A DNA stretch of 63,575 nt, the filler included, from Octopus bimaculoides (lineage: Eukaryota): the NCBI RefSeq assembly GCF_001194135.2. It is 6 parts of 3 records of this genome, joined end to end, with 100 filler letters (N's around TTAATTAATTAA, not from the genome) between each part and the next. Parts side by side here need not be neighbours in the genome. Positions count along the whole stretch, not along the records: positions 1 to 15,495 come from NC_069000.1; 5 more parts are not named here. One strand, 5' to 3'. Under the pieces are notes generated by a model. It was not told the origin of the DNA and searched no databases. It saw only the letters and a list, made by a program, of their open reading frames with translations. Position numbers and translations under genes: made by a program. Shown piece after piece: positions 1 through 15,495 of this stretch; position 1 is the first letter of the stretch, and each line of letters begins with the position of its first letter.

Positions 1-558
1 TATATATATATATATATATATATATATGTTCGTATAATTGCTTGATTTATATATTTGTGCTTTGTGCACCTAATTCCACTAATGATGTAGTGGATACAGA
101 GACAAAATGTTATGTATTATTGCTCGTGTCTGTGTCTTCAATTTGTTTTCTGAAGTCATTAGCAACAAATTTTCGAGCAAACCAGTCGCTAACAACAAAG
201 GCAGAAGTGACAAGAGTATTAAATAAATGTAATGGATGATTAAGCGATGACTCCTACAACGCTTCTCTTAGTCCCCCCCCCTTGTGTTATTTCGGTAGAT
301 ATTTCTATTGCTAATAATTTCGACAACAAAACTACACCTTATTAATGTGTTGACATATGAAGTGGTCCTTTATAGGAAATGCTCTCAAAAATGTGTAAAC
401 ACTATTTGCAAACATTAAAATTAGAAATAATGTTATTAACGGACAGAGGAAAATGTAAAATAGTTGAAAATGTAATAGATTTCTAATGATTTGATAGTTT
501 TGCGTTTTCCTTGTGTTTGTTTCAGCTCCATTTGAAATTTATGTATTTACATAAATAG

Positions 559-776
559 TACAGGGGTGCTGAAGAGTTTCTAGCTTTAAGGGTATTGCTA
601 AAGTCCTGGATGGAGCCCGAATCTCTGAATTATTTTACAGGGCTTAGAAAAACTGGAACACAGCTGCAATAAGTGCGTGAATCTTAGAGGAGAATGTGTT
701 GAATAAATTCATAATTAACTGATCCTCCTATATTTTCTTTTACCCAAAGCCAGGAACGTTTCAGCACAGCCTCATA
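559..776 (+). mobile_element. Mariner-derived MITE
   Basis: Imperfect ~29-bp TIRs (tacaggggtgctgaagagtttctagcttt / aaagccaggaacgtttcagcacagcctcata), TA ends, and a relic GLEKLEHSCNKCVNLRGECVE like the mariner transposase C-terminus. Confidence 0.7.
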
Positions 777-3452
777 CAAGGGTAGATAGAGATATATGTG
801 TAGGGTTTATTTGGAAACAATTTTGTAGAACTGACAACTGGAAAATATCGCTAAAACTGCCGAAGAAAGCAGGCAAGTCTTTTACATATCATACCTTTAA
901 GTGAAAGCTCTACTGAACAATATAGACGTAGAATGACCTAATAATTAAGAAGTTAACTTCACAGCCACAGGTTCCAGATTCGATCCCATTGCGTGGAAAA
1001 CCTGTATAAATGTCATTCTTCTTATCCTTCAGTCGAATCTAATTTTGTTAATGAAATAAGGACAACGAAATATGTAGCATAGAATCCCACCAGATAAACT
1101 GTACCTGAAATGCAAAACTACCGGCTTATCACAAACTGATTCATACTGATTCTACCTGAGAATCACGTGAAAGGGAAATATGTCTATAGAATATTCATAT
1201 AGTCGCAGGTTAATTCAGTGAGCAGAAAATTTACTTGCTTGAACAAATCAATATTCATCGTTGAACCGGAAAGAAATCATTTAATATTTAACAATATAAT
1301 AACTGGAATTACCACAACTCAAACACCTCTGCTCGGGCATATAATATTATAAGAAAAAAACAGCCGAATTGCCTCAAATAATCTTCATTTCAGTGTCATT
1401 TATATTATATATATATATTATATCGTTTGCGACAAATTACGTAAGTTTCATGTCAGGAGAAAGATGTCTGGCTTAGCTCAAGTCATGCCCTGGTCATCTT
1501 AAAACGGTAATTTTCAGGTTTTTGATAAGAGTAGCACCAGAAAATGTGTTACTAGAGAGTAATGCTTTCTTTTGTTAGAAAAGGTTTAAACTCAGTGTAG
1601 TAAACGCGAGTTACCTTTTACAACATAAAAACTATTTTCCTAAATAGTACAAAAAGTATTTTGAAAGCATATAGTGTTGTATTGAACTAATTCGAGTATT
1701 TACACGCATTATTGGTGCATGAGTTGAGGATGGTTGAAGTATTTAAGTATATTAACACCTTTTCTTAATGGGTTATTTCGATACTCCAAAATGTAGATTT
1801 TCAAAGTATAGATGTATGCATTAGATACTTGTATTTAGCATCTTTGTGCACACATTTAAATATACAAATGAAGGGCTAGCTAAGAGAATACAGTCCCCTA
1901 AGGACATACTTTCTAACTCGTTAAGATAAATCTTTATTGATGCATACATCTTGTTTAAATCTAAATTCTGGAATTCTGGAATTCAAATGGCTCTTCAGCT
2001 TCAGTAGCATGGATATTTTTTTCTGCTATTCAAAAGTTGCATATTTTTATCCATTCAAGTTCAACTTTGATCTCATATAGGAAACTTATTTGATATGAGT
2101 GATTTGGTAAATTCGTGACATGTTTTGTCAGTGTGCCTGAATGATGAATCGTTTTTACAAAATCATATTTTTAAGTTACTTTCGCGATATACCAAAGTAC
2201 TTTTCTTATTGGCCATTTTATTCTGTGTGCATCAGATGACTTCGACTTGAGATCTTAAGATGGGCCGAGTAAGCATGATTCAACATTTTCGTCCACTAGA
2301 TCAGGCATATATACCTTCTTAGACTATATTATATGTTATACATACACGCATACACATACAAAAACACACACACATGTATATATATATTATATGTGTGTGT
2401 GTGTGTGTATGTATGTATATGCATATGTAGATATATGACTGTATATANNNNNNNNNNATATATATGCATATATATACATGCATAAAGGAATAAATATCGA
2501 TTTAGATATAAATATAGATATGTATGCATATATTTATGACTGTATGTACATATGCACACACACACATACACAGATATACATATACGTTTTTGTTATATAT
2601 TTCCCCAAATGCGTTTATATATGGATGGAAGTAATTGAAAAAGTTATTCGTTCTGAGCGCATTTACACCTCACGTGTTCTTCAGACTTTTTATTCTTTGA
2701 CTGGTTTTCGTCGCATAAATGTCAGTTACAATGTCTTACACTGTTCTCTAAATGTTTGTCATTATGCCTGAGTATAGTTAAAATTATGCAGAAAAACATT
2801 TTTCGTGCCAGAAGCCATAAGACAAATTCTTGCATTCCATTAAGTGGCTTATAATTTTGTGTCAAAATGTATTTATTTGCCAAGTAAATATCACATTTTT
2901 GGCTGCTCTAGTAGAAGCTTTCGTAGACTCCTTGCAGACGGTTTTATTGCACTATTGTTTTCGGCCTTGTGTTCTGATGTATTCATTGTATTTCGTCTCA
3001 TAGAACGAAATAATGAGATTTTAAGCAATGGATTTTGACTGTATTTTCTTTAAAGATGATTTAGTATGCTTTGTTACCGATGTTTATTGTTAACCATTCA
3101 TTATAAAGTGGGCATTAATTCCAATTATTAACGTTAAGCGTGGCTTCTGATGTCGACAATTCTGGTTATATGCTATGACTGTGTAGCATTTCCTATGCAG
3201 ATCTAGCTAGCCTTTACTTTGATCAGGATAAATAAATTATAACATTTAGAATCCACACAAAGTGTTTATTAAGTTGTTCAAGAGGTTTTTATCACAATGT
3301 GAGTATGTTGTTCTCTACTACAAAGTGAGATAAACTATAATACATTTGTATTGTTTTCTCCTGATTATAGATCGTTGTGTTTGGGTATGAAATCGATTTT
3401 GTCTTCTATAGAAAGATACGTTTTCTGATTTATATTTTCCTTCTCTTTACAG

Positions 3453-3588
3453 CGGCAAGCTGGTATTGAATCTGTACAGCGTCAGAATATAGTTCAGACA
3501 TTAGACCGTGGTACCTTCACTGTTTACCGCCAACCAATTGCCTTAGACCGTTTGATAATGCACGAATTGACTCCATCAGAATCAATGT
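3453..3588 (+). CDS. PLEKHG7: RhoGEF PH-domain exon (RQAGIESVQRQNIVQTLDRGTFTVYRQPIALDRLIMHELTPSESM)
   Basis: Pyrimidine tract plus AG at 3451-3452 and GTAAGT donor at 3589. 136 nt, phase 0 to 1. The motif TVYRQPIALDRL resembles PLEKHG7 TVLDQPIPLDRL (recalled). Confidence 0.75.
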
Positions 3589-3790
3589 GTAAGTCTTGAA
3601 TTATAATATTGCATACGTAATTACAAAATCTACCTAACATTATAATTTTTTTTAGGATGTCGTCTTTTTAGTTCCAAGTTACTTTTCAACAAATGGACCT
3701 ACGACCATAAGGTATTTCAACCATAACCAACCGGTTATTTCAATCGTGCAGGGGTTAAGAATCGTACTCTGCAATTTGTTATTCTGTAAG

Positions 3791-4026
3791 AGGCGGCGAG
3801 CTGGCAGAAACGTTAGCACGCCGGGCGAAATGCTTAGCGGTATTTCGTCTGCCGCTAAGTTCTGAGTTCAAATTCCGCTGAGGTCGACTTTGCTTTTCAT
3901 CCTTTCGGGTTCAATTAAATAAGTACCAGTTATGCACTGGGGTCGATATAATCAACTTAATCCCTTTGTCTGTCTTTGTTTGTCCCCTCTATGTTTAGCC
4001 TCTTGTGGGCAATAAAGAAATAAGAA
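3791..4026 (+). mobile_element. Octopus-type tRNA-derived SINE family A (ggcggcgagctggcagaaacgttagc...)
   Basis: Near-identical copies at 28039-28266, 37780-38421, 45135-45345 and 56380-56496. Contains the B-box-like GAGTTCAAATTCC. Confidence 0.8.
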
Positions 4027-5805
4027 GCTGAAGTAGGATTTCATTCATATTTTGCTGTTATTTCAAGAAGATGGTCTGACACATTATGCCAGTATAGGTA
4101 TTTTTGACGTGGAGGTGCGAAGAAGGGGTTCAGATATCAGGTCCATCGTGTAATAATTTAGCAGAGAATTTATCACTAATCTATATATTCACATTGTTAG
4201 ATAGATCATTCGTATGCTAAATGATAATTAGGTAAATCTAAATTCCCCAATATTCTCTCTTTCTTTCTCTCGACCTATCTCTACGCCAGGCTCCTCCTCT
4301 TTCCTATTATTTTGTCTCTACATTTCTATGTCTTTGCTTGACCTTTAACTTGACCTTTATTTCAGAAACTCCATATTTATTTTAAAGTGGATATACAGAA
4401 ATACATCTGATTGATACTCACTGTTATATGAAGACACAACTTTTCTATACCTTTCTTGCTACTGCAATTATGTATATTGTTTCGAGAAATTATCATATAT
4501 CATATTGTCTTTTTCTGGTAAAATATCTAATAATTACTCTCCATGTATTTTTGTGGTGGAAGTTTTAGTACTTCGTGGGAGAAAGAAGGCTTTGATTAAT
4601 GATTTTTTTTTTGCTCTTCTCAACATCAAATGGTGGAGAAGCTTTTGTAAATGAAACGTGAAAAGGTATTTTAACCGTCCATCTCTGTATATTTATGGTG
4701 CAAATTGTTCAATATCTCTTACCTAAATATCACAATTTATGCAAGGCACAGAACCTTAACATTCGTTTCACTGAGAAACCATGACATATTAAAAACTCCT
4801 TCCAGCTTTAAACTGACGAATATTACTTAACTGATACTCTATATAATTACACCATTCCTAACACCTTACTGATTAACGCCTTACTGCATTGTGTCTCCTC
4901 AACTTGATGACTTCACCATTAATGCTTACACTATCTTTTGTCTTTAAGGCCATATAACTGGGAAAATGCACTAGCTACGCTACTGTTAAATTGAAAACAC
5001 CCCAGTAAATCCCCAGTGACCATATTTTCTCGGCTTAATGTTCCCATTATCCAATAGCAGCGAATCTGTTCCATAGTCAGTTTATCTCCTTTTTGCTTGT
5101 TAAGAAATATAAATGAGCATAACTGAACTTCGTTAATAAGTATCGATTACTGTACATGACTGGCCTGTATATGCGTCTATATTTAACGGAGATTCCACTT
5201 CGTAACTACCTACACACACTCATATACACACAGGCACACACATAGGCACACAGACACGCGCGCGCGTGCGCAAACACTTACACGCACACACACACACACA
5301 GCCATATGCACAAATCATACTCACTAATACGGAAACACACGTACGTTCCAGTTTATTGACAGCCATTATGAAACTACATCAAAGAAACCAAAGACAGATT
5401 GACTTTTGAAATACGGTAAAGCATTTTATTTTTCAAGTATATATATGTAATATATATATTCAAAGCTTACGATTCATTTGGCACCCGCTTTAGCGTTAAC
5501 ACTTCCCAATAAATATCACCAACGCCGTTATAACGTCTGAAATTACACAACGCATCATACATCAATACATTTTTACCCTTTATGTTTTTATTGTATTATA
5601 TGTTCTGCTTCCAACACCACTACTGTGACTGCCCCAAACATCTCTCAGATCATGCAGCTGCATTAATATGAAGCACAACAGAGATGTTTATTATTCGGGA
5701 TCTGTTATTTGTTTTTAGAATTCATTTCGTTTACTTTTNNNNNNNNNNTTTTTTTGTGGGGGTGGGGGGGCGTAAATTTATAATTTGTGTATTTGTCTGT
5801 GTGTA

Positions 5806-5837
<32 letters not shown>

Positions 5838-6228
5838 TGTGTTTGTGTGTGTGCGTGTGTGTGTTGTGTATGTATGTGTGTGAGGGAGAGAAATTGCGAG
5901 AGAAACAGAGAGAGGGGAAGAGAGAGAGAGAAAGCGGTAAAGAAAAAGAAAGAAAGAAAGTAAATATCGGCTGGTCAGAAATCGGCCATGTTACATGAAA
6001 TAGACTGTATATACGAAAAAAGACTGCACAACAGAAGATATATCAAAGGGTATAGATTGAATATTATCTAAGGGTAGTGACGTGAGTTTAGGGTAGACTG
6101 TTAATAAGGCCGTCTTCCAAGCATGTATGCACATACGCAGGTGCATGTAGATATTTATTCATAAATACATATGTGTTTATACATACGATATACACTTATC
6201 TATATATTTTATATTAATGCATGTAGAT

Positions 6229-6273
<45 letters not shown>

Positions 6274-6281
6274 TGGTGTGT

Positions 6282-6324
<43 letters not shown>

Positions 6325-7515
6325 CCAATATACATACCACTGGCTGCTAAGAGGGACTGCGGACAGGCTCAATTTGCTGTTATTACTGTAACTTTCATTT
6401 TAGCCCCAGTTAACTCTATGATAAAATACATTTTCGCCGTGTCCGTCTTATCCATATGTGCAGCATTCCCATGATCCCATTAGCTAACGTATGTTGTTAA
6501 AGGGTTATGGTTTGATTTATGGTACATTCAGCTACTTTCAACTTGCCGAGCAAATACATCGAGGCTCTTTTATTGGCTTCAACAGAGATGGCGGTTGTAT
6601 CTGAATGATAAAATGAAGCAAAAATATATTTAAAGCGGGTTTGTGTTAATACAGAACGAATTTATTCAAATTCGAAATTTATTTCTTTATTGCTCACAAA
6701 AGGATAAACATAGAGGAGACAAACAAGGACAGATAAAGGGATTGAATCGATTACATCGACCCCANNNNNNNNNNNNNNNNNNNNNNNNNNNNNNNNNNNN
6801 NNNNNNNNNNNNNNNNNNNNNNNNNNNNNNNNNNNNNNNNNNNNNNNNNNNNNNNNNNNNNNNNNNNNNNNNNNNNNNNNNNNNNNNNNNNNNNNNNNNN
6901 NNNNNNNNNNNNNNNNNNNNNNNNNNNNNNNNNNNNNNNNNNNNNNNNNNNNNNNNNNNNNNNNNNNNNNNNNNNNNNNNNNNNNNNNNNNNNNNNNNNN
7001 NNNNNNNNNNNNNNNNNNNNNNNNNNNNNNNNNNNNNNNNNNNNNNNNNNNNNNNNNNNNNNNNNNNNNNNNNNNNNNNNNNNNNNNNNNNNNNNNNNNN
7101 NNNNNNNNNNNNNNNNNNNNNNNNNNNNNNNNNNNNNNNNNNNNNNNNNNNNNNNNNNNNNNNNNNNNNNNNNNNNNNNNNNNNNNNNNNNNNNNNNNNN
7201 NNNNNNNNNNNNNNNNNNNNNNNNNNNNNNNNNNNNNNNNNNNNNNNNNNNNNNNNNNNNNNNNNNNNNNNNNNNNNNNNNNNNNNNNNNNNNNNNNNNN
7301 NNNNNNNNNNNNNNNNNNNNNNNNNNNNNNNNNNNNNNNNNNNNNNNNNNNNNNNNNNNNNNNNNNNNNNNNNNNNNNNNNNNNNNNNNNNNNNNNNNNN
7401 NNNNNNNNNNNNNNNNNNNNNNNNNNNNNNNNNNNNNNCACCAGAAGGAATTGGACGAAATACCGCTATATATTATATATATTAACACGGTATATGTTAT
7501 TTTGCCTCGTTTCAG

Positions 7516-7613
7516 CGTGCGGTTTAAAAAACACGTTTATGTTGCTGCATATCAGTCGATTTCAACAGGTGATTGGAGTTTATACTCTCCAGGCTTGCAA
7601 TGAAACTTCCAAG
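7516..7613 (+). CDS. PLEKHG7: RhoGEF PH-domain exon (SCGLKNTFMLLHISRFQQVIGVYTLQACNETSK)
   Basis: TTTCAG acceptor, GTAAGA donor, 98 nt, phase 1 to 0, in frame with both neighbours. Resembles PLEKHG7 GLRNAFLIQHENRYRQCIAAFLLQA (recalled). Confidence 0.8.
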
Positions 7614-8096
7614 GTAAGAAAAAAAAACTATTCTTATATGCATATTCGATAGATACGTCTGTGTGTATGTGCGTGTGTTTGTGCATGCGGTAGTGTGTGT
7701 GTGTGTGTATAGGTTTATATATCTATAAGTGTGTGTGCTAACAAACTATATCATTAAACAAAGTGGCGTGACTGAGTTATTTGTAAGATCGATAACCTTG
7801 CCTCTCTCCACAAGTGCGCGATGTGGATAACATTTGACGCCATAACGTGCATATCTGATGGACATACTGTATGAATCATACGTGAAACTTGGAGTCATGA
7901 TGCACGACTTTTACTTCTTCAATTTTTAGTATGATCGTTGTACATTAGATGCATTCATTAGACACCCATATTAAAAGTCTTCATAAAATTTTTCGTAGTT
8001 GACGGTTTTATTTGTGGAAATCACAACCAATCAAATATATATGTGTGAGTGTCTCTCTCTCTCTCTCTCTCTCTCTTTCTTCTTCTCTCTCTCTCA

Positions 8097-8180
<84 letters not shown>

Positions 8181-8199
8181 GTATATATATATATATATA

Positions 8200-9262
8200 T
8201 ATAAATTCAATAATAGGATGAATTGTTTTACAAGAATTTATCAAGTAGCTAGCGTGAAAAAAACCTCATAAGGGAAAATATCCATCATTTATTCCCAAAA
8301 TATATATTTATCTATATAAGGGCATTACTATACAATAATGCCTTACGCTATGGAGGACTCTAAGGTCAGACTACCATAAAAAACACATTTTTACCGAACG
8401 CGAGGAAATGCAACTCTCAAAGCCAGCCCCTTAAAAACAGACTGAATTATAGATCATGATTTCGCATTTATTGTAGTATTATACAACCTCTACTCGTTAG
8501 TATAATATGGTCAAAATAAAGAGAAGTAAACAGAAAATCAACATACCAAACGAACACCGTGTATCCAGTAAAGTACATAGAAGACTGTTTATCGCTATTT
8601 ACCTATATAAGTGGCAGGGATTTCGAATTGCATCTCGGTACATGTGTTTTTTTCAGAATAAATTCAGCACTGAATATATTCTTGTTATATATTTCAATTC
8701 AATAATAGGATGAATTCTTTTACAAGAATTTATCAAGTAGCTAGCCTGAACAAAACCTCATAAGGGAAATAATCCATCATTTATTCCCGAATATATATAT
8801 ATATAATAATGCCTCACGCTTAGAGGGACTCCATAAGTCAAAACTACAAAAATAAGCACATTTTTACTGAGGGAATGCAACTTTCAAAGCTAATCTCCTA
8901 AAAACTTTTAACTTAACGGTAAACCAATGGTTTCATAATTAATGCAGTAAACTGCATCTTTTATTCATCAGTACACGTATGGTCAAGGCACATAAGAATA
9001 AACAAGAATCAACATACCCTGACGAACACTCCATGTATTCAGCATAGTACATAGACGATTGTTCATCCCTATCTATCCGTGAAAGAGGCTGGCTTCTTTT
9101 GGTAGTTTTGACTTATGGAGTCCCTCTAAGCGTGAGGCATTTTTGTATAGTAATGCCCTTATATAAATTAAATTATATATATTTATGGAACAAAATGATG
9201 TTTTTTTTTCCTTATGAGATTTGTTCACGCTAACTACTTGATAAACTGTTATACATTTTTAT
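8200..9262. mobile_element. Foldback element with a tandemly duplicated left arm
   Basis: Two ~490-bp direct copies start near 8200 and 8695, followed by an inverted copy of the arm at ~9100-9262. Confidence 0.6.
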
Positions 9263-10099
9263 CCTAATACTGTATGATATATATATATATATATATATAC
9301 ATTCGAAAATCAATTCTATTCAAAAATATAGCTCGTTTTCCTGTCAAAATACAATAATAATAATAAAATGAATGTATATATATCGACTAACAATAAATAT
9401 CAAATGAATNNNNNNNNNNNNNNNNNNNNNNNNNNNNNNNNNNNNNNNNNNNNNNNNNNNNNNNNNNTATATATATATATAACTATAATCATCATTATAT
9501 GTACTCGCAGAAATACCGCTCTCCGGGTTGTTTTTTGCTACTCACTCGATAATTTTTTCACATTTGATTCCCAATTCTAATAACTTTTATAATATTTTAC
9601 GTCTAATTAGTTCTTTGTATAATAGTGCTTAGTATAATAGTGCTCAGCAGTAAATACTGGTTTCATTATTTTATCAGTCATAATCCCTCTTTTTTAAAGA
9701 GTCAATCTGTTATATATATTTATCATTAATAACTGGCAGAACTGAAATATGTGTGCATAGATAGAGAGATAGGTAGATAGATAGATAGATAGAGAGATAG
9801 ATAGATAGATAGACAGACAGATAGAGAGAGAGACACACACACACATACACAAAGCTTTGGTGCTGTGAGAACACATGGGAATGACGTTTCCTTACTTTTT
9901 CAAATATACCCAAAAGTAAAATGATCTAATATAACGATATCATTCATTCGGCATGTGTTGAAATATGCCAAAGCAATTTAATTCCACACAAATATATGCT
10001 ACTTTACATATAATTAATTTGTGTTAATTCTATTTACTGAAACTTGCTAAAAATCATATTTTGCTTTAAAGTAGTATCTCCTTGTAGACACAATTGTCA

Positions 10100-10900
10100 G
10101 TAATCATACTATTTCCATTTCTCATCCAATATTAGCCTTCTTTCGAACTCTAGATAATGCAACCTACAGCTGACCATGTGAGAAGAATTGTCTCGGAAGA
10201 TATATTCCAATCTGTTCAAAAGTCTGTCCCTCTGCCTTATTGCACGTCAAGACAAAAGCTGGCTTGAGAGGAAATTGTTTGCATGTAAATGGAAATGGAA
10301 ATTCCATCTCTTGAGATACATGTGGTATTCTTGGGATTAGCAGAGTTGATCCCGCACAAGGACCAGAAGCAACCTTAGCCTCAATAACATGATCATATAA
10401 ACTGACAATGATGTAGTGTGTGCCATTGCAATGTCCATTAGTAGCATCTACATTTTTCAGAAGCATTATGCATCGTTTTTTCTTCAGTTTGAGGATGTGT
10501 GCTGTAAACTCTGATGGTATTAGCATGTTGATGAACTCGATTGAGTACAGAGTTTCATTATCAGCTGTATCTGAGCCTCTGTATAGTTTTAACTTACCAG
10601 GGATCCTGGCCAACAGAAAATCAGTCACAAAATGTGCTGTTTCATTTGTTGTAGCAATGGTGGTTCTATTTGCAAGCCACACAGGGATTGTGAAGTTATT
10701 TTTGAGATCAACACATACAAAATCACTTAGATCTGAAAGAATACCACTTTCAGGTCAATGGTTATCGGGTAGTTTCATTTTGAATTCACCTAAGTTTGGT
10801 TCAACAGAAATGTTACCATTTCGTACATCAAGAAGGTAATTAGCAAACTCTCTTTCATCAGAATGACCTTCTATAAGAAATCTTAGATTGGTTTGTCAAC
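10100..10900 (-). mobile_element. Helitron PIF1-like helicase C-terminal relic
   Basis: IMLLKNVDATNGHCNGTHY, QFPLKPAFVLTCNKAEGQTF and FSHGQL*(V)ALSRV helicase motifs, with an internal stop. Confidence 0.9.
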
Positions 10901-11959
10901 TCCACAACTTCCACATAATCGCAAAGAAAAGATCTTTTTAGTGTTGCATCAACAATTTGTGATCTGACACCATTATTTTGTGCAGTGGAAACACAATCAT
11001 GTCTACGTCTCGGTGCATATTCAGGCATCTGATTCAATCTCTTTGCCCTGGTTTCCTCTGATTCAGTTGCCCGTCTTTTTCTCTGCCATTGTGCCTTTGC
11101 TGCTAAATTTTCTTTTTCAGTCGCATATTACATATAAATGAAAGTTCGTTAAAAACTATCTTGTTCAGCGTGCTAGAAATAGCAGCGACCACATAGTTAT
11201 TATTGTAAGGCTTATAGAGTTCCAAATATCCATACCAACAAAATGACTTCTTCATTAAAAAAAAAAAAGAATTTTCATTTTATCAAAAATATTCATTTTA
11301 CAAACTCCAGAAACTGATAATATTCTGGAAATTGTGCCTCGTATCAAGGTTACACAGCTATTTTGTGTAATAGCATGCATTCATTCAACACAAAATCCCT
11401 TAAAAATTATACCGGTATATTAAAAATATTCACTTCATCAAAAATATTCATTTAACAAACTTCGGAAACTGATGATATTCTTGAAATTGTGTTTCGTATC
11501 AAAGCTATAGAGCTAATATTAAATTATCATTAATGAAAACAGATGCGAGCGAGAATTACAAATTGTCGCAAATACAAACATAAAATTTTGCCTGCAACGA
11601 ATTAATAATGTTTACTATTAAACATTAAAATCTACTCCGCAGTGAATGCAATGGATATTTAAATTTAGGAAGAATTGAACGCAGTGAATCCAATGAATAT
11701 GTAAATTTGCGAGAATTTGGAGTTTATAAATCAATAAAATTCAGAAATCGAAATTATATGCAATTTCTTAGAACATGAATTTTTTTACAGACAGTCAAGT
11801 TGTAATATTCCTTCCTTTTATAACTTTTAGTAAATGTTACATACCTTATTAATAAGCAGCCTTCTCCATTATAGTATAGATATGATATATATATATATAT
11901 ATGTATATGTTCGTACTTATAGGCATATGTGTATTATACATACGCGCACGCTGAGCGCG

Positions 11960-12010
<51 letters not shown>

Positions 12011-12484
12011 NNNNNNNNNNNNNNNNNNNNNNNNNNNNNNNNNNNNNNNNNNNNNNNNNNNNNNNNNNNNNNNNNNNNNNNNNNNNNNNNNNNNNNNNNC
12101 ATGCATATATACATGCATACAAAATACACAATACACACACACACACACACAAACAGAAGAGAAACCGCCCTCAAAAGCCATTACATCTTCAAAAAACACC
12201 AGCAACCGAAAGATCTCAAAAACAGAAACAACAACAGATCTTTGTGGCTAATGTTAACCTGTAATCAATATTAGTGAATTTTCTAGTATTATGTTTATAA
12301 TAGTTTTGCTTCCGCGCAATATAACATTTTAAATTTAAAACTTGTTTTTTATCCCTCTGTTGTGTTTTATACATCTGTTGCAATTTGTGGAGACTGGTTT
12401 TCTCTTCAATGTTTTTAAGAAATTTTGTTGTTTTTCTTCTCATTATCCTTAATATTAAGCTTATCATTTGATTTTATTCTGCAG

Positions 12485-12682
12485 AGCCAATGGCTGACAT
12501 CATTGAAAGATGCCAAAGAAAAGTACGCAGATAAACACGGGCAAAACCCAGAAAACAGTGACAGAACCAGTACAGAAGCAACGTCACTACGGTCTGAACC
12601 GTCTTCGGAGAAATTTCCTGATTGGACATCGCTGAAATGCAATCATCCCAAGTCGAAATCAATGGACGTTGTGCATTTCTGA
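12485..12682 (+). CDS. PLEKHG7: Terminal coding exon up to the first stop (SQWLTSLKDAKEKYADKHGQ...SMDVVHF*)
   Basis: TTCTGCAG acceptor, phase 0. Supplies the PH C-terminal helix Trp (KSQWLTSL). TGA at 12680-12682. Confidence 0.75.
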   Translation, partial: SQWLTSLKDAKEKYADKHGQNPENSDRTSTEATSLRSEPSSEKFPDWTSLKCNHPKSKSMDVVHF

Positions 12683-12907
12683 CAATTACCACCCGCTGTT
12701 CAGCGAAATCAAGGGAAGCCGAACAGCATTTTCTACCAAAAGCAATTCCCTGATCCAATCGAAGAAGGAAAAAACACACCCGAAGAAATGGATGTTATCT
12801 CTAAGTTTGATAATATTGACGGAACGGATTCTGAAACCAAAAACGTTGCAATAGACGAAAGTGAACAAAAAATTAGTATTGATAAAGAGGAATCCCGTGA
12901 AATATGA
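12683..12907 (+). other. Putative readthrough extension, 74 aa (QLPPAVQRNQ...KISIDKEESREI*)
   Basis: Same frame stays open for 74 codons after TGA-CAA-TTA until TGA at 12905-12907. 17 of 74 residues are D/E. Confidence 0.5.
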
Positions 12908-12994
12908 ACGGCCATTATCGTTATTATCACCATATTAATAATATAAATAATATGGATAATATTAATATGACTATTGATAACAATAGTATCAGCA

Positions 12995-13080
<86 letters not shown>

Positions 13081-13159
13081 NNNNNNNNNNNNNNNNNNNN
13101 NNNNNNNNNNNNNNNNNNNNNNNNNNNNNNNNNNNNNNNNNNNNNNNNNNNNNNNNNNN

Positions 13160-13204
<45 letters not shown>

Positions 13205-14452
13205 ATTCTTATATGCCAATATAACTTTACTGATTGGAATATACATATATAGATATATAAATGCATATATACATGTGCATATATATTTTGTAAAATACCT
13301 TAAACATGTATGTTTTAAAACCACATACACTATGGCTGTGTTGACTTTGTACACCATTCTATACAAATTATTGTATACACTTATATCTACAGATTTACAC
13401 CAGATAATTATTTTATACGAATAAAATCTACGTATACGAATACATATAGTCCCACAGAAATAATTTCAAGCACACGGATACACAAACACACACACATTAT
13501 AATGCATTAACAAATATATATATATATATNNNNNNNNNNNNNNNNNNNNNNNNNNNNNNNNNNNNNNNNNNNNNNNNNNNNNNNNNNNNNNNNNNNNNNN
13601 NNNNNNNNNNNNNNNNNNNNNNNNNNNNNNNNNNNNNNNNNNNNNNNNNNNNNNNNNNNNNNNNNNNNNNNNNNNNNNNNNNNNNNNNNNNNNNNNNNNN
13701 NNNNNNNNNNNNNNNNNNNNNNNNNNNNNNNNNNNNNNNNNNNNNNNNNNNNNNNNNNNNNNNNNNNNNNNNNNNNNNNNNNNNNNNNNNNNNNNNNNNN
13801 NNNNNNNNNNNNNNNNNNNNNNNNNNNNNNNNNNNNNNNNNNNNNNNNNNNNNNNNNNNNNNNNNNNNNNNNNNNNNNNNNNNNNNNNNNNNNNNNNNNN
13901 NNNNNNNNNNNNNNNNNNNNNNNNNNNNNNNNNNNNNNNNNNNNNNNNNNNNNNNNNNNNNNNNNNNNNNNNNNNNNNNNNNNNNNNNNNNNNNNNNNNN
14001 NNNNNNNNNNNNNNNNNNNNNNNNNNNNNNNNNNNNNNNNNNNNNNNNNNNNNNNNNNNNNNNNNNNNNNNNNNNNNNNNNNNNNNNNNNNNNNNNNNNN
14101 NNNNNNNNNNNNNNNNNNNNNNNNNNNNNNNNNNNNNNNNNNNNNNNNNNNNNNNNNNNNNNNNNNNNNNNNNNNNNNNNNNNNNNNNNNNNNNNNNNNN
14201 NNNNNNNNNNNNNNNNNNNNNNNNNNNNNNNNNNNNNNNNNNNNNNNNNNNNNNNNNNNNNNNNNNNNNNNNNNNNNNNNNNNNNNNNNNNNNNNNNNNN
14301 NNNNNNNNNNNNNNNNNNNNNNNNNNNNNNNNNNNNNNNNNNNNNNNNNNNNNNNNNNNNNNTATATATATATATACATGTATATACATATATATATATA
14401 AGTGAATGTATATATATACATATATATGTAAACGAATATATACAACCATTGT

Positions 14453-14483
<31 letters not shown>

Positions 14484-15145
14484 TTATATATACATATATA
14501 CCGTATACGTGTCAGTTTATATATGTATATATTTGTATATATACGCAAATACACATTTGTATGTATATGTATATGTACGTATTCACATACGTATATATGT
14601 ATGTATATAAATATATATTAATATATACACACATATATATATTCATATATATATCTGCGCCTGTGAGTGTTATTTGTATATTTACGATGGACATTTTATT
14701 TATTTCACCATATGTAAATATTATAGAAATCCGTGTGTTTGTACGACGCGCGGTTTGTGCATTTCTTATTTAATACATGCATACATACATTTATTGATAA
14801 CATACACACCTACACAAACATATACATACAGGTGCATATAGATATATAATATTCATATTTATACACATACATACATAATCACCCATAAAACGCACGCAGT
14901 TACACAAACACGCCTGTATGTAACGTATGCGAATGTATATATTCTTATATATATATATATGTATATATATATATGTGTGTTTATATATGTATATATATGT
15001 GTATATATATATGTATGTATACATATATGTATATACGTATATGTGTCTATATTCGTACATATTTATGCATATATACGTAATTATACATGCACATATACAT
15101 ATGCATACATATATATATGTTTGTGTGTGAATGTATATATAGATA

Positions 15146-15200
<55 letters not shown>

Positions 15201-15449
15201 GTGTATACATATGAATAGATAGATCTATATACTAATATATACACATATATGCGCACTTACATTTATATATATTTGTGTGCATGTGTATATTGTACATGTA
15301 TACATGTATACATGTATACATATATATATGTATATGCACATACACAGATATATATTTGACTTTTCTTATGCATACATATATGTATATAAATATATATACA
15401 TATATATACACATACACATATATATATGTATGTATATATGTATATATCT

Positions 15450-15495
<46 letters not shown>

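Follow-up and report, generated by a model that had tools for sequence, protein, structure and literature searches.

The terminal exon and its in-frame extension

The window analysed here is a stretch of 63,575 nucleotides (nt), filler included, from Octopus bimaculoides (NCBI RefSeq assembly GCF_001194135.2), and all positions are counted along the whole stretch. Our subject is a terminal exon in the part taken from NC_069000.1 (positions 1 to 15,495), in which the coding frame reaches a TGA stop codon and then stays open as far as a second stop. An initial annotation of the locus had proposed programmed stop-codon readthrough in a PLEKHG7-like RhoGEF; the TGA, the CAA TTA directly after it, the 74 open codons and the second stop are all present where it had placed them. 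The features of the exon and its borders are as follows.

12466..12484, plus strand: 3' end of the intron, with a T-rich tract and a CAG acceptor (pyrimidine fraction 0.74; AG conserved in three contigs of a related species, L001-L003)
12485..12679, plus strand: upstream coding part of the terminal exon, 65 codons, reading SQWLTSLKDAKEKY...MDVVHF
12680..12682, plus strand: first in-frame stop TGA (UGA), identical in the window and in the three contigs of the related species
12683..12688, plus strand: CAATTA, an exact match to the CARYYA leaky-stop hexanucleotide, directly 3' of the stop
12683..12904, plus strand: in-frame extension, 74 sense codons, reading QLPPAVQRNQGKPNSIFYQKQFPDPIEEGK...IDKEESREI
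12695..12727, plus strand: predicted hairpin, 10-bp stem and 13-nt loop, starting 12 nt after the stop
12701..12703, plus strand: CAG, candidate in-frame alternative 3' splice site (exon start 12704), within the 5' arm of the hairpin
12905..12907, plus strand: second in-frame stop TGA, where conservation ends

The acceptor dinucleotide lies at 12483-84, and more than 12 kb of the intron that it closes is inside the window. From 12485 the open frame reads SQWLTSLKDAKEKYADKHGQ...KSKSMDVVHF. Beyond the TGA the translation begins QLPPAVQRNQGK, with QLPPAVQ encoded by 12683-12703, and contains the peptide segments NQGKPNSIFYQK and QFPDPIEEGK. The composition of the extension, 17 D/E against 9 K/R, gives an isoelectric point of 4.35, and the tail is acidic and probably disordered. 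By chance, a frame that stays open for 74 codons or more beyond a stop is expected in 0.3-0.6% of cases (composition model and shuffles), CARYYA directly after a stop in 0.3%, exact CAATTA in 0.05%, and a perfect 7-bp stem beginning no more than 20 nt from the stop in 1.8%; these figures are post hoc, for one window among many scanned, and the comparative evidence weighs more. No poly(A) signal was found within 12485-13090.

The exon starts with a motif, QWLxxLxxA, that appears to resemble the C-terminal helix of a PH domain, and the preceding exons seem to lie outside the window, beyond the intron of more than 12 kb. No Pfam match, to a DH/PH exon or otherwise, was found in the plus-strand frames of 1 to ~5200 and 7441 to ~11970, and the 140-residue C-terminus (upstream coding part, stop position and extension) matched no Pfam family and no PDB sequence. 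The label of PLEKHG7-like RhoGEF is a putative one, as is the ending AESSEI ascribed with it to human PLEKHG7.

Conservation of the stop codon and of the frame beyond it

When the 140-residue conceptual product was searched against 5.8 billion proteins, a single cluster, P0001, was recovered, carried on three short contigs of genomic DNA (loci L001 to L003; sequencing runs SRR11869385, -91 and -94). Since these contigs align with the window through the upstream intron, they represent orthologues or, at the least, syntenic copies in a related species, and the comparison is one of two lineages, the window and one related species in three independent samples. TGA CAA TTA is the same in the window and in all three contigs, the hexanucleotide being invariant in the four sequences. 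The alignment of orthologs that the initial annotation had called for thus yielded one related species, carrying an identical TGA-CAA-TTA. That annotation had also raised the prospect of an assembly error or a private allele, and both are ruled out by the presence of the TGA in three independent samples of a second species. On this comparison the TGA is genuine and dates back at least to the separation of the two lineages.

In the gene call for P0001 (L001 387-797) two TGA codons are read as Trp, that is, a TGA=Trp code was chosen. We considered whether the W at the stop position represents a sense codon and rejected it as an artefact of the gene caller's code, the DNA reading TGA. The gene caller had in effect favoured the read-through frame as the best-scoring gene, and such calls can mimic a sense codon in an orthologue. 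From 1.84 billion representatives, an exhaustive HMMER search brought up nothing further except an unrelated repeat protein (P0002), two metagenome scans for further relatives gave no match, and no transcript or protein from the gene was present within the protein collections searched.

The extension is 88.5% identical to its counterparts in L001-L003 with no insertions or deletions (indels), its first 69 residues being gap-free with nine substitutions. In the frame of the upstream coding sequence the ratio of non-synonymous to synonymous divergence (dN/dS, Nei-Gojobori) is 0.13-0.14 for the extension, with a synonymous divergence (dS) of 0.45-0.50, and is 0.06 for the first 43 codons. The 65 upstream codons give closely similar values (90% identity, no indels, dN/dS 0.11, dS 0.40-0.44), and the other two plus-strand frames of the extension give dN/dS of 1.2-2.7 and contain stops. 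The 23 nucleotide differences in the extension fall 4, 5 and 14 at codon positions 1, 2 and 3; when 23 changes were placed randomly, nine or fewer amino-acid changes resulted in 0.05% of trials (P = 5e-4). Two polymorphisms occur among L001-L003 within the extension, both of them synonymous in its frame. A gene on the opposite strand was tried as the source of this pattern and rejected. All antisense frames contain stops over 12683-12882, with synonymous to non-synonymous changed codons of 9/11, 4/18 and 2/19; the minus frame whose wobble positions coincide is among those with stops, and another minus frame, which has a stop at 12730-32 but none over 12733-12882, has two synonymous against 15 non-synonymous changed codons.

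The borders of the conserved region coincide with those of the open frame. In the intron, identity is 70% (30% mismatches) with nine indel events in 385 nt. Identity rises from 0.5-0.7 to at least 0.9 exactly at the acceptor, and this plateau ends with the extension frame; identity drops to 0.53-0.59 from ~12880, and the sequence beyond that point is 53-78% identical, with indels of 19, 1 and 3 nt. No indels are present over 12454-12887, the first being at the very end of the open frame, so that the extension contains none against ~4.8 expected from the intron rate. As dS is close to the intron divergence, the synonymous sites are not under extra constraint. From these patterns we conclude that the sequence after the stop appears to be translated often enough to be under purifying selection. 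The initial annotation had allowed that the downstream frame might prove not to be conserved; instead, purifying selection on it is as strong as on the upstream coding part.

Conservation does not reach the C-terminus of the extension. A 19-nt indel, not a multiple of three, lies after 12888 (L001 ~775-793), following codon 69 of the extension and six codons before the second stop of the window. It is the related species that carries the 19 additional bases, and the tails differ: ...ISIDKEESREI* in the window (74 codons) against ...ISIDKEND* in the related species (71 codons). The suggestion that EESREI represents a conserved, possibly PDZ-binding tail is thus not borne out. By this alignment, the conserved part of the extension is its first ~43 residues, for which no Pfam family match was found.

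Routes past the stop codon

Programmed translational readthrough of a leaky UGA is the best fit to these observations, because UGA-CAAUUA gave ~15% readthrough in human cells; we hold this reading tentatively and put it a little short of an even chance. The figure comes from HEK293T cells and an OPRL1 reporter with CAAUUA behind its UGA, where the six bases all contribute (PMC4132726). Most ribosomes would stop at the UGA at 12680-82, giving a protein ending ...MDVVHF, and a fraction would insert a near-cognate Trp, Arg or Cys there and go on for 74 codons (71 in the related species), adding the acidic tail. Insertion of these near-cognate residues at UGA is known from yeast reporter systems. 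The signal would be in three parts, namely UGA-C, the full CAAUUA and possibly the 10-bp hairpin 12 nt downstream. Eukaryotic stops are leakiest as UGA-C, a context present in 32% of the readthrough genes of Drosophila (PMC4615788). Tobamoviruses use CAR-YYA, which is active in plants with UGA too (PMC3542737), and a CARYYA-type effect on readthrough has been shown only in plants, in yeast (CARNBA) and in HEK293T cells (PMC3542737, PMC4615788, PMC4132726). Of the initial proposal, the conserved stop context and the purifying selection on the extension stand, and the route may be readthrough, editing or splicing; we infer ribosomal readthrough as that route, together with stimulation by the hairpin and a functional difference between the two isoforms.

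The stem-loop described initially was GCTGTTC (12695-12701), 12 nt after the stop, paired with GAACAGC (12721-12727). The two are exact reverse complements at that distance, and the 7 bp prove to be part of a longer stem of 10 bp, in which 12695-12704 is paired with 12718-12727. The window hairpin has one A.C mismatch and a predicted energy of -13.0 kcal/mol (z = -3.0 against dinucleotide shuffles), that of L001 has a perfect stem (-17.7 kcal/mol, z = -5.2), and that of L002 and L003 has one C.A mismatch (-13.2 kcal/mol). Paired cells number 28 of 30, eight pairs are invariant and every haplotype retains at least nine of the ten pairs; the hairpin is conserved as a predicted structure but is not proven. 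Over the surrounding 201 nt the predicted stability is unremarkable (z = -1.25). Within its first 30 codons the extension has a single amino-acid change, CCG (Pro) to CTG (Leu) between 12719-12721 of the window and L001, and the same change converts the A.C mismatch of the window hairpin to an A-U pair in the related species.

Several points weigh against readthrough. We know of no case of CARYYA as a natural signal in an animal cellular gene, and adenosine-to-inosine (A-to-I) recoding is pervasive in coleoid cephalopods, the apparent group of the host. The support is a sequence comparison of only two lineages. No covariation was found in the hairpin among its three distinct sequences, and its predicted probability ranges from 0.07 to 0.85 depending on the length folded. 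Known stimulators are typically ~8 nt from the stop (PMC3542737) and the hairpin here is at 12 nt. Finally, a CAG that is in frame and has a pyrimidine-rich tract is found 21 nt beyond the stop, and as a candidate acceptor it means that alternative splicing could explain the same coding signature.

Such splicing, which had not been considered in the initial annotation, is in our view unlikely, though it deserves serious attention. The upstream exon would sometimes be joined to CAG/CGA at 12703/12704 and not at 12484/12485, which would make the extension ordinary coding sequence belonging to another isoform. As 219 nt (73 codons) separate the two sites, splicing to either preserves the frame, and this other isoform would skip 65 codons and the TGA to end RNQGKPNS...EESREI. 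The coding signature from 12704 onward is equally well explained in this way. The AG of the CAG at 12701-12703 is conserved in all sequences, and a branch-point-like CTGAC motif lies ~20 nt upstream of it, overlapping the TGA. The pyrimidine fraction over the preceding 19 nt is 0.68, weaker than the T-rich tract of the real acceptor (0.74), and the CAG is sequestered within the 5' arm of the 10-bp predicted hairpin. The two changes between TGA and CAG (A>G and T>C) keep the pyrimidine tract and fit splicing and readthrough alike. However, splicing to 12704 would delete SQWLTSLKDAKEKY, apparently the last helix of a PH domain, and purifying selection would hardly be expected to act on the broken domain that this implies. 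The CAAUUA match, exact and conserved (0.3% by chance), is also left unexplained. An in-exon intron ('exitron') removing the stop was rejected, there being no conserved GT donor scoring at least 7/9 with an in-frame AG. RNA editing would match readthrough in accounting for the coding signature and the conserved TGA, and we consider it a distinctly unlikely route. Here ADAR would deaminate A12682 so that UGA is read as UGG (Trp), and edited transcripts would encode the long form. Recoding is massive in the transcriptomes of coleoids. The predicted partner of A12682 is U12653 (p = 0.72), within a short local hairpin, but the duplex around the A is only ~8 bp with a bulge, in the 201-nt region with z = -1.25. 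Its neighbours are a 5' G and a 3' C and not the favourable 5' U or A, and 5' G is the neighbour least favoured by ADARs. Synonymous sites around the stop diverge at the neutral rate and are not depleted of variation; Liscovitch-Brauer and colleagues reportedly found in 2017 that conserved coleoid editing sites usually have depleted variation around them. Coleoid editome pipelines treat stop-loss events explicitly, and the events described are UAG>UGG (PMC8382921). The supplements on editing sites of Shoshan 2021 contain no PLEKHG entry, and editing, too, leaves the CAAUUA match unexplained.

Explanations without a second protein, or with another decoding of the stop, fare less well. We regard as improbable that no extended protein exists, the region after the stop being a conserved element of the 3' untranslated region (UTR), or its frame and substitution pattern being due to chance. 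This draws on the fact that there are two lineages and only 23 differences, in a window picked from many. Constraint on a UTR would not, however, give the 4/5/14 pattern, a dN/dS of 0.13 in one frame and a neutral synonymous rate, nor would it end conservation exactly at the end of the frame, and chance is opposed by the randomisation (P = 5e-4) and by the indels (none against ~4.8 expected). An ancestral nonsense mutation may instead have truncated a longer protein whose tail has not yet decayed; the TGA is common to both species, so the mutation would predate their split. Such truncation predicts a dN/dS near 1, ~30% divergence, indels and stops, whereas dN/dS is 0.13 and neither indels nor stops are observed, and a decaying truncation, contradicted as it is by the substitution pattern seen in the alignment, is very improbable. 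Selenocysteine is scarcely credible as the residue encoded by the UGA. The codon is indeed a conserved UGA, but no Cys or redox motif adjoins the site, and a search for a selenocysteine insertion sequence (SECIS) element gave no family match at E up to 10 in 15.5 kb, within which gaps at 13081-13159 and 13530-14362 break up the 3' UTR.

Genomic context and relation to known recoding systems

AT-rich sequence, abundant microsatellites and assembly gaps characterise the window, all of them to be expected in a draft animal genome. Runs of N occur at 2448-57, 5739-48, 6765-7438, 9410-67, 12011-12099, 13081-13159 and 13530-14362, and most of them adjoin microsatellites, such as (CA)n before 12011, (ATT)27 at 12998-13078 and (TA)n after 13159. 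These gaps leave the gene with an incomplete 3' UTR, and the SECIS and poly(A) searches are limited accordingly. Within the long intron, an open reading frame of 172 residues on the minus strand (10164-10682) carries a Pif1 helicase 2B domain (PF21530, E 6.6e-11) and probably represents what is left of a Helitron-like or Pif1-like element. A 106-nt direct repeat at 8194-8299 and 8686-8791 (92% identity, 492 nt apart), adjoining long (TC)n and (TA)n runs, probably represents two copies of a short interspersed element. The 128 sub-threshold Rfam matches (2316-2590, 14362-15494 and others), the higher-scoring of which are to mir-297, mir-466, mir-3149 and similar families, were rejected as microRNA genes; they are low-complexity artefacts, the high scorers lying in TA/CA microsatellites and all being far below the gathering score.

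Among known systems, animal readthrough genes have been recognised by their coding signature, including Drosophila kelch, hdc and ~280 others and mammalian OPRL1, OPRK1, AQP4, MAPK10, MDH1 and VDR. The candidate resembles them in its conserved stop, UGA-C context, protein-like substitutions and lack of indels as far as the next stop; a 3' stem-loop is sometimes present in these genes and one is predicted here too. It differs in having CAAUUA where the known mammalian signal is UGA-CUAG, and its signature comes from two lineages and from sequence alone. Tobamovirus-type (type I) leaky stops consist of the stop codon and CAR-YYA (Skuzeski 1991; reviewed in PMC3542737), and the CAAUUA after the stop here is the textbook form of that motif. 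The natural type I cases are plant RNA viruses, mostly with UAG, whereas the present one is an animal nuclear gene with UGA, and unlike type I signals, which need no hairpin, it has an additional hairpin downstream. Type II viral readthrough (alphaviruses and others, with UGA-C(GG/UA)) shares with the candidate a UGA followed by C and a stable stem-loop shortly downstream, but there the stem-loop is extended and ~8 nt downstream, compared with a spacer of 12 nt, a stem of only 10 bp and the triplet CAA here. Coleoids are the animals in which recoding by editing is most frequent, and their stop-loss editing (STOP>W) would likewise turn a conserved genomic stop into Trp and give the same extended protein; in contrast to its UAG>UGG sites with a favourable 5' U, the A here follows a G and no extended duplex is present.

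Conserved readthrough is documented in insects, nematodes, mammals and viruses, and in cephalopods protein recoding is assumed to come mainly from A-to-I editing. A full-text literature search returned no report of stop-codon readthrough in a cephalopod, and a full-text search that did not require the readthrough term returned nothing relevant on readthrough in other molluscs. It is conceivable, though we consider it rather less than an even prospect, that the locus represents an animal nuclear gene using a plant-virus-type UGA-CAAUUA, aided by a hairpin, for conserved readthrough and, among cephalopods or molluscs, the first of its kind.

Ribosome, ADAR and spliceosome are each a possible means of getting past this conserved UGA, and the three routes differ in what they predict. 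If the route is editing or splicing, the case is an ordinary one for the clade. If readthrough is true, the unusual element would be the natural use of CARYYA by an animal gene; a signalling-type protein would gain a C-terminal isoform with a conserved segment of ~43 residues, and ribosomal recoding would join RNA editing as a way in which coleoids extend their proteins.
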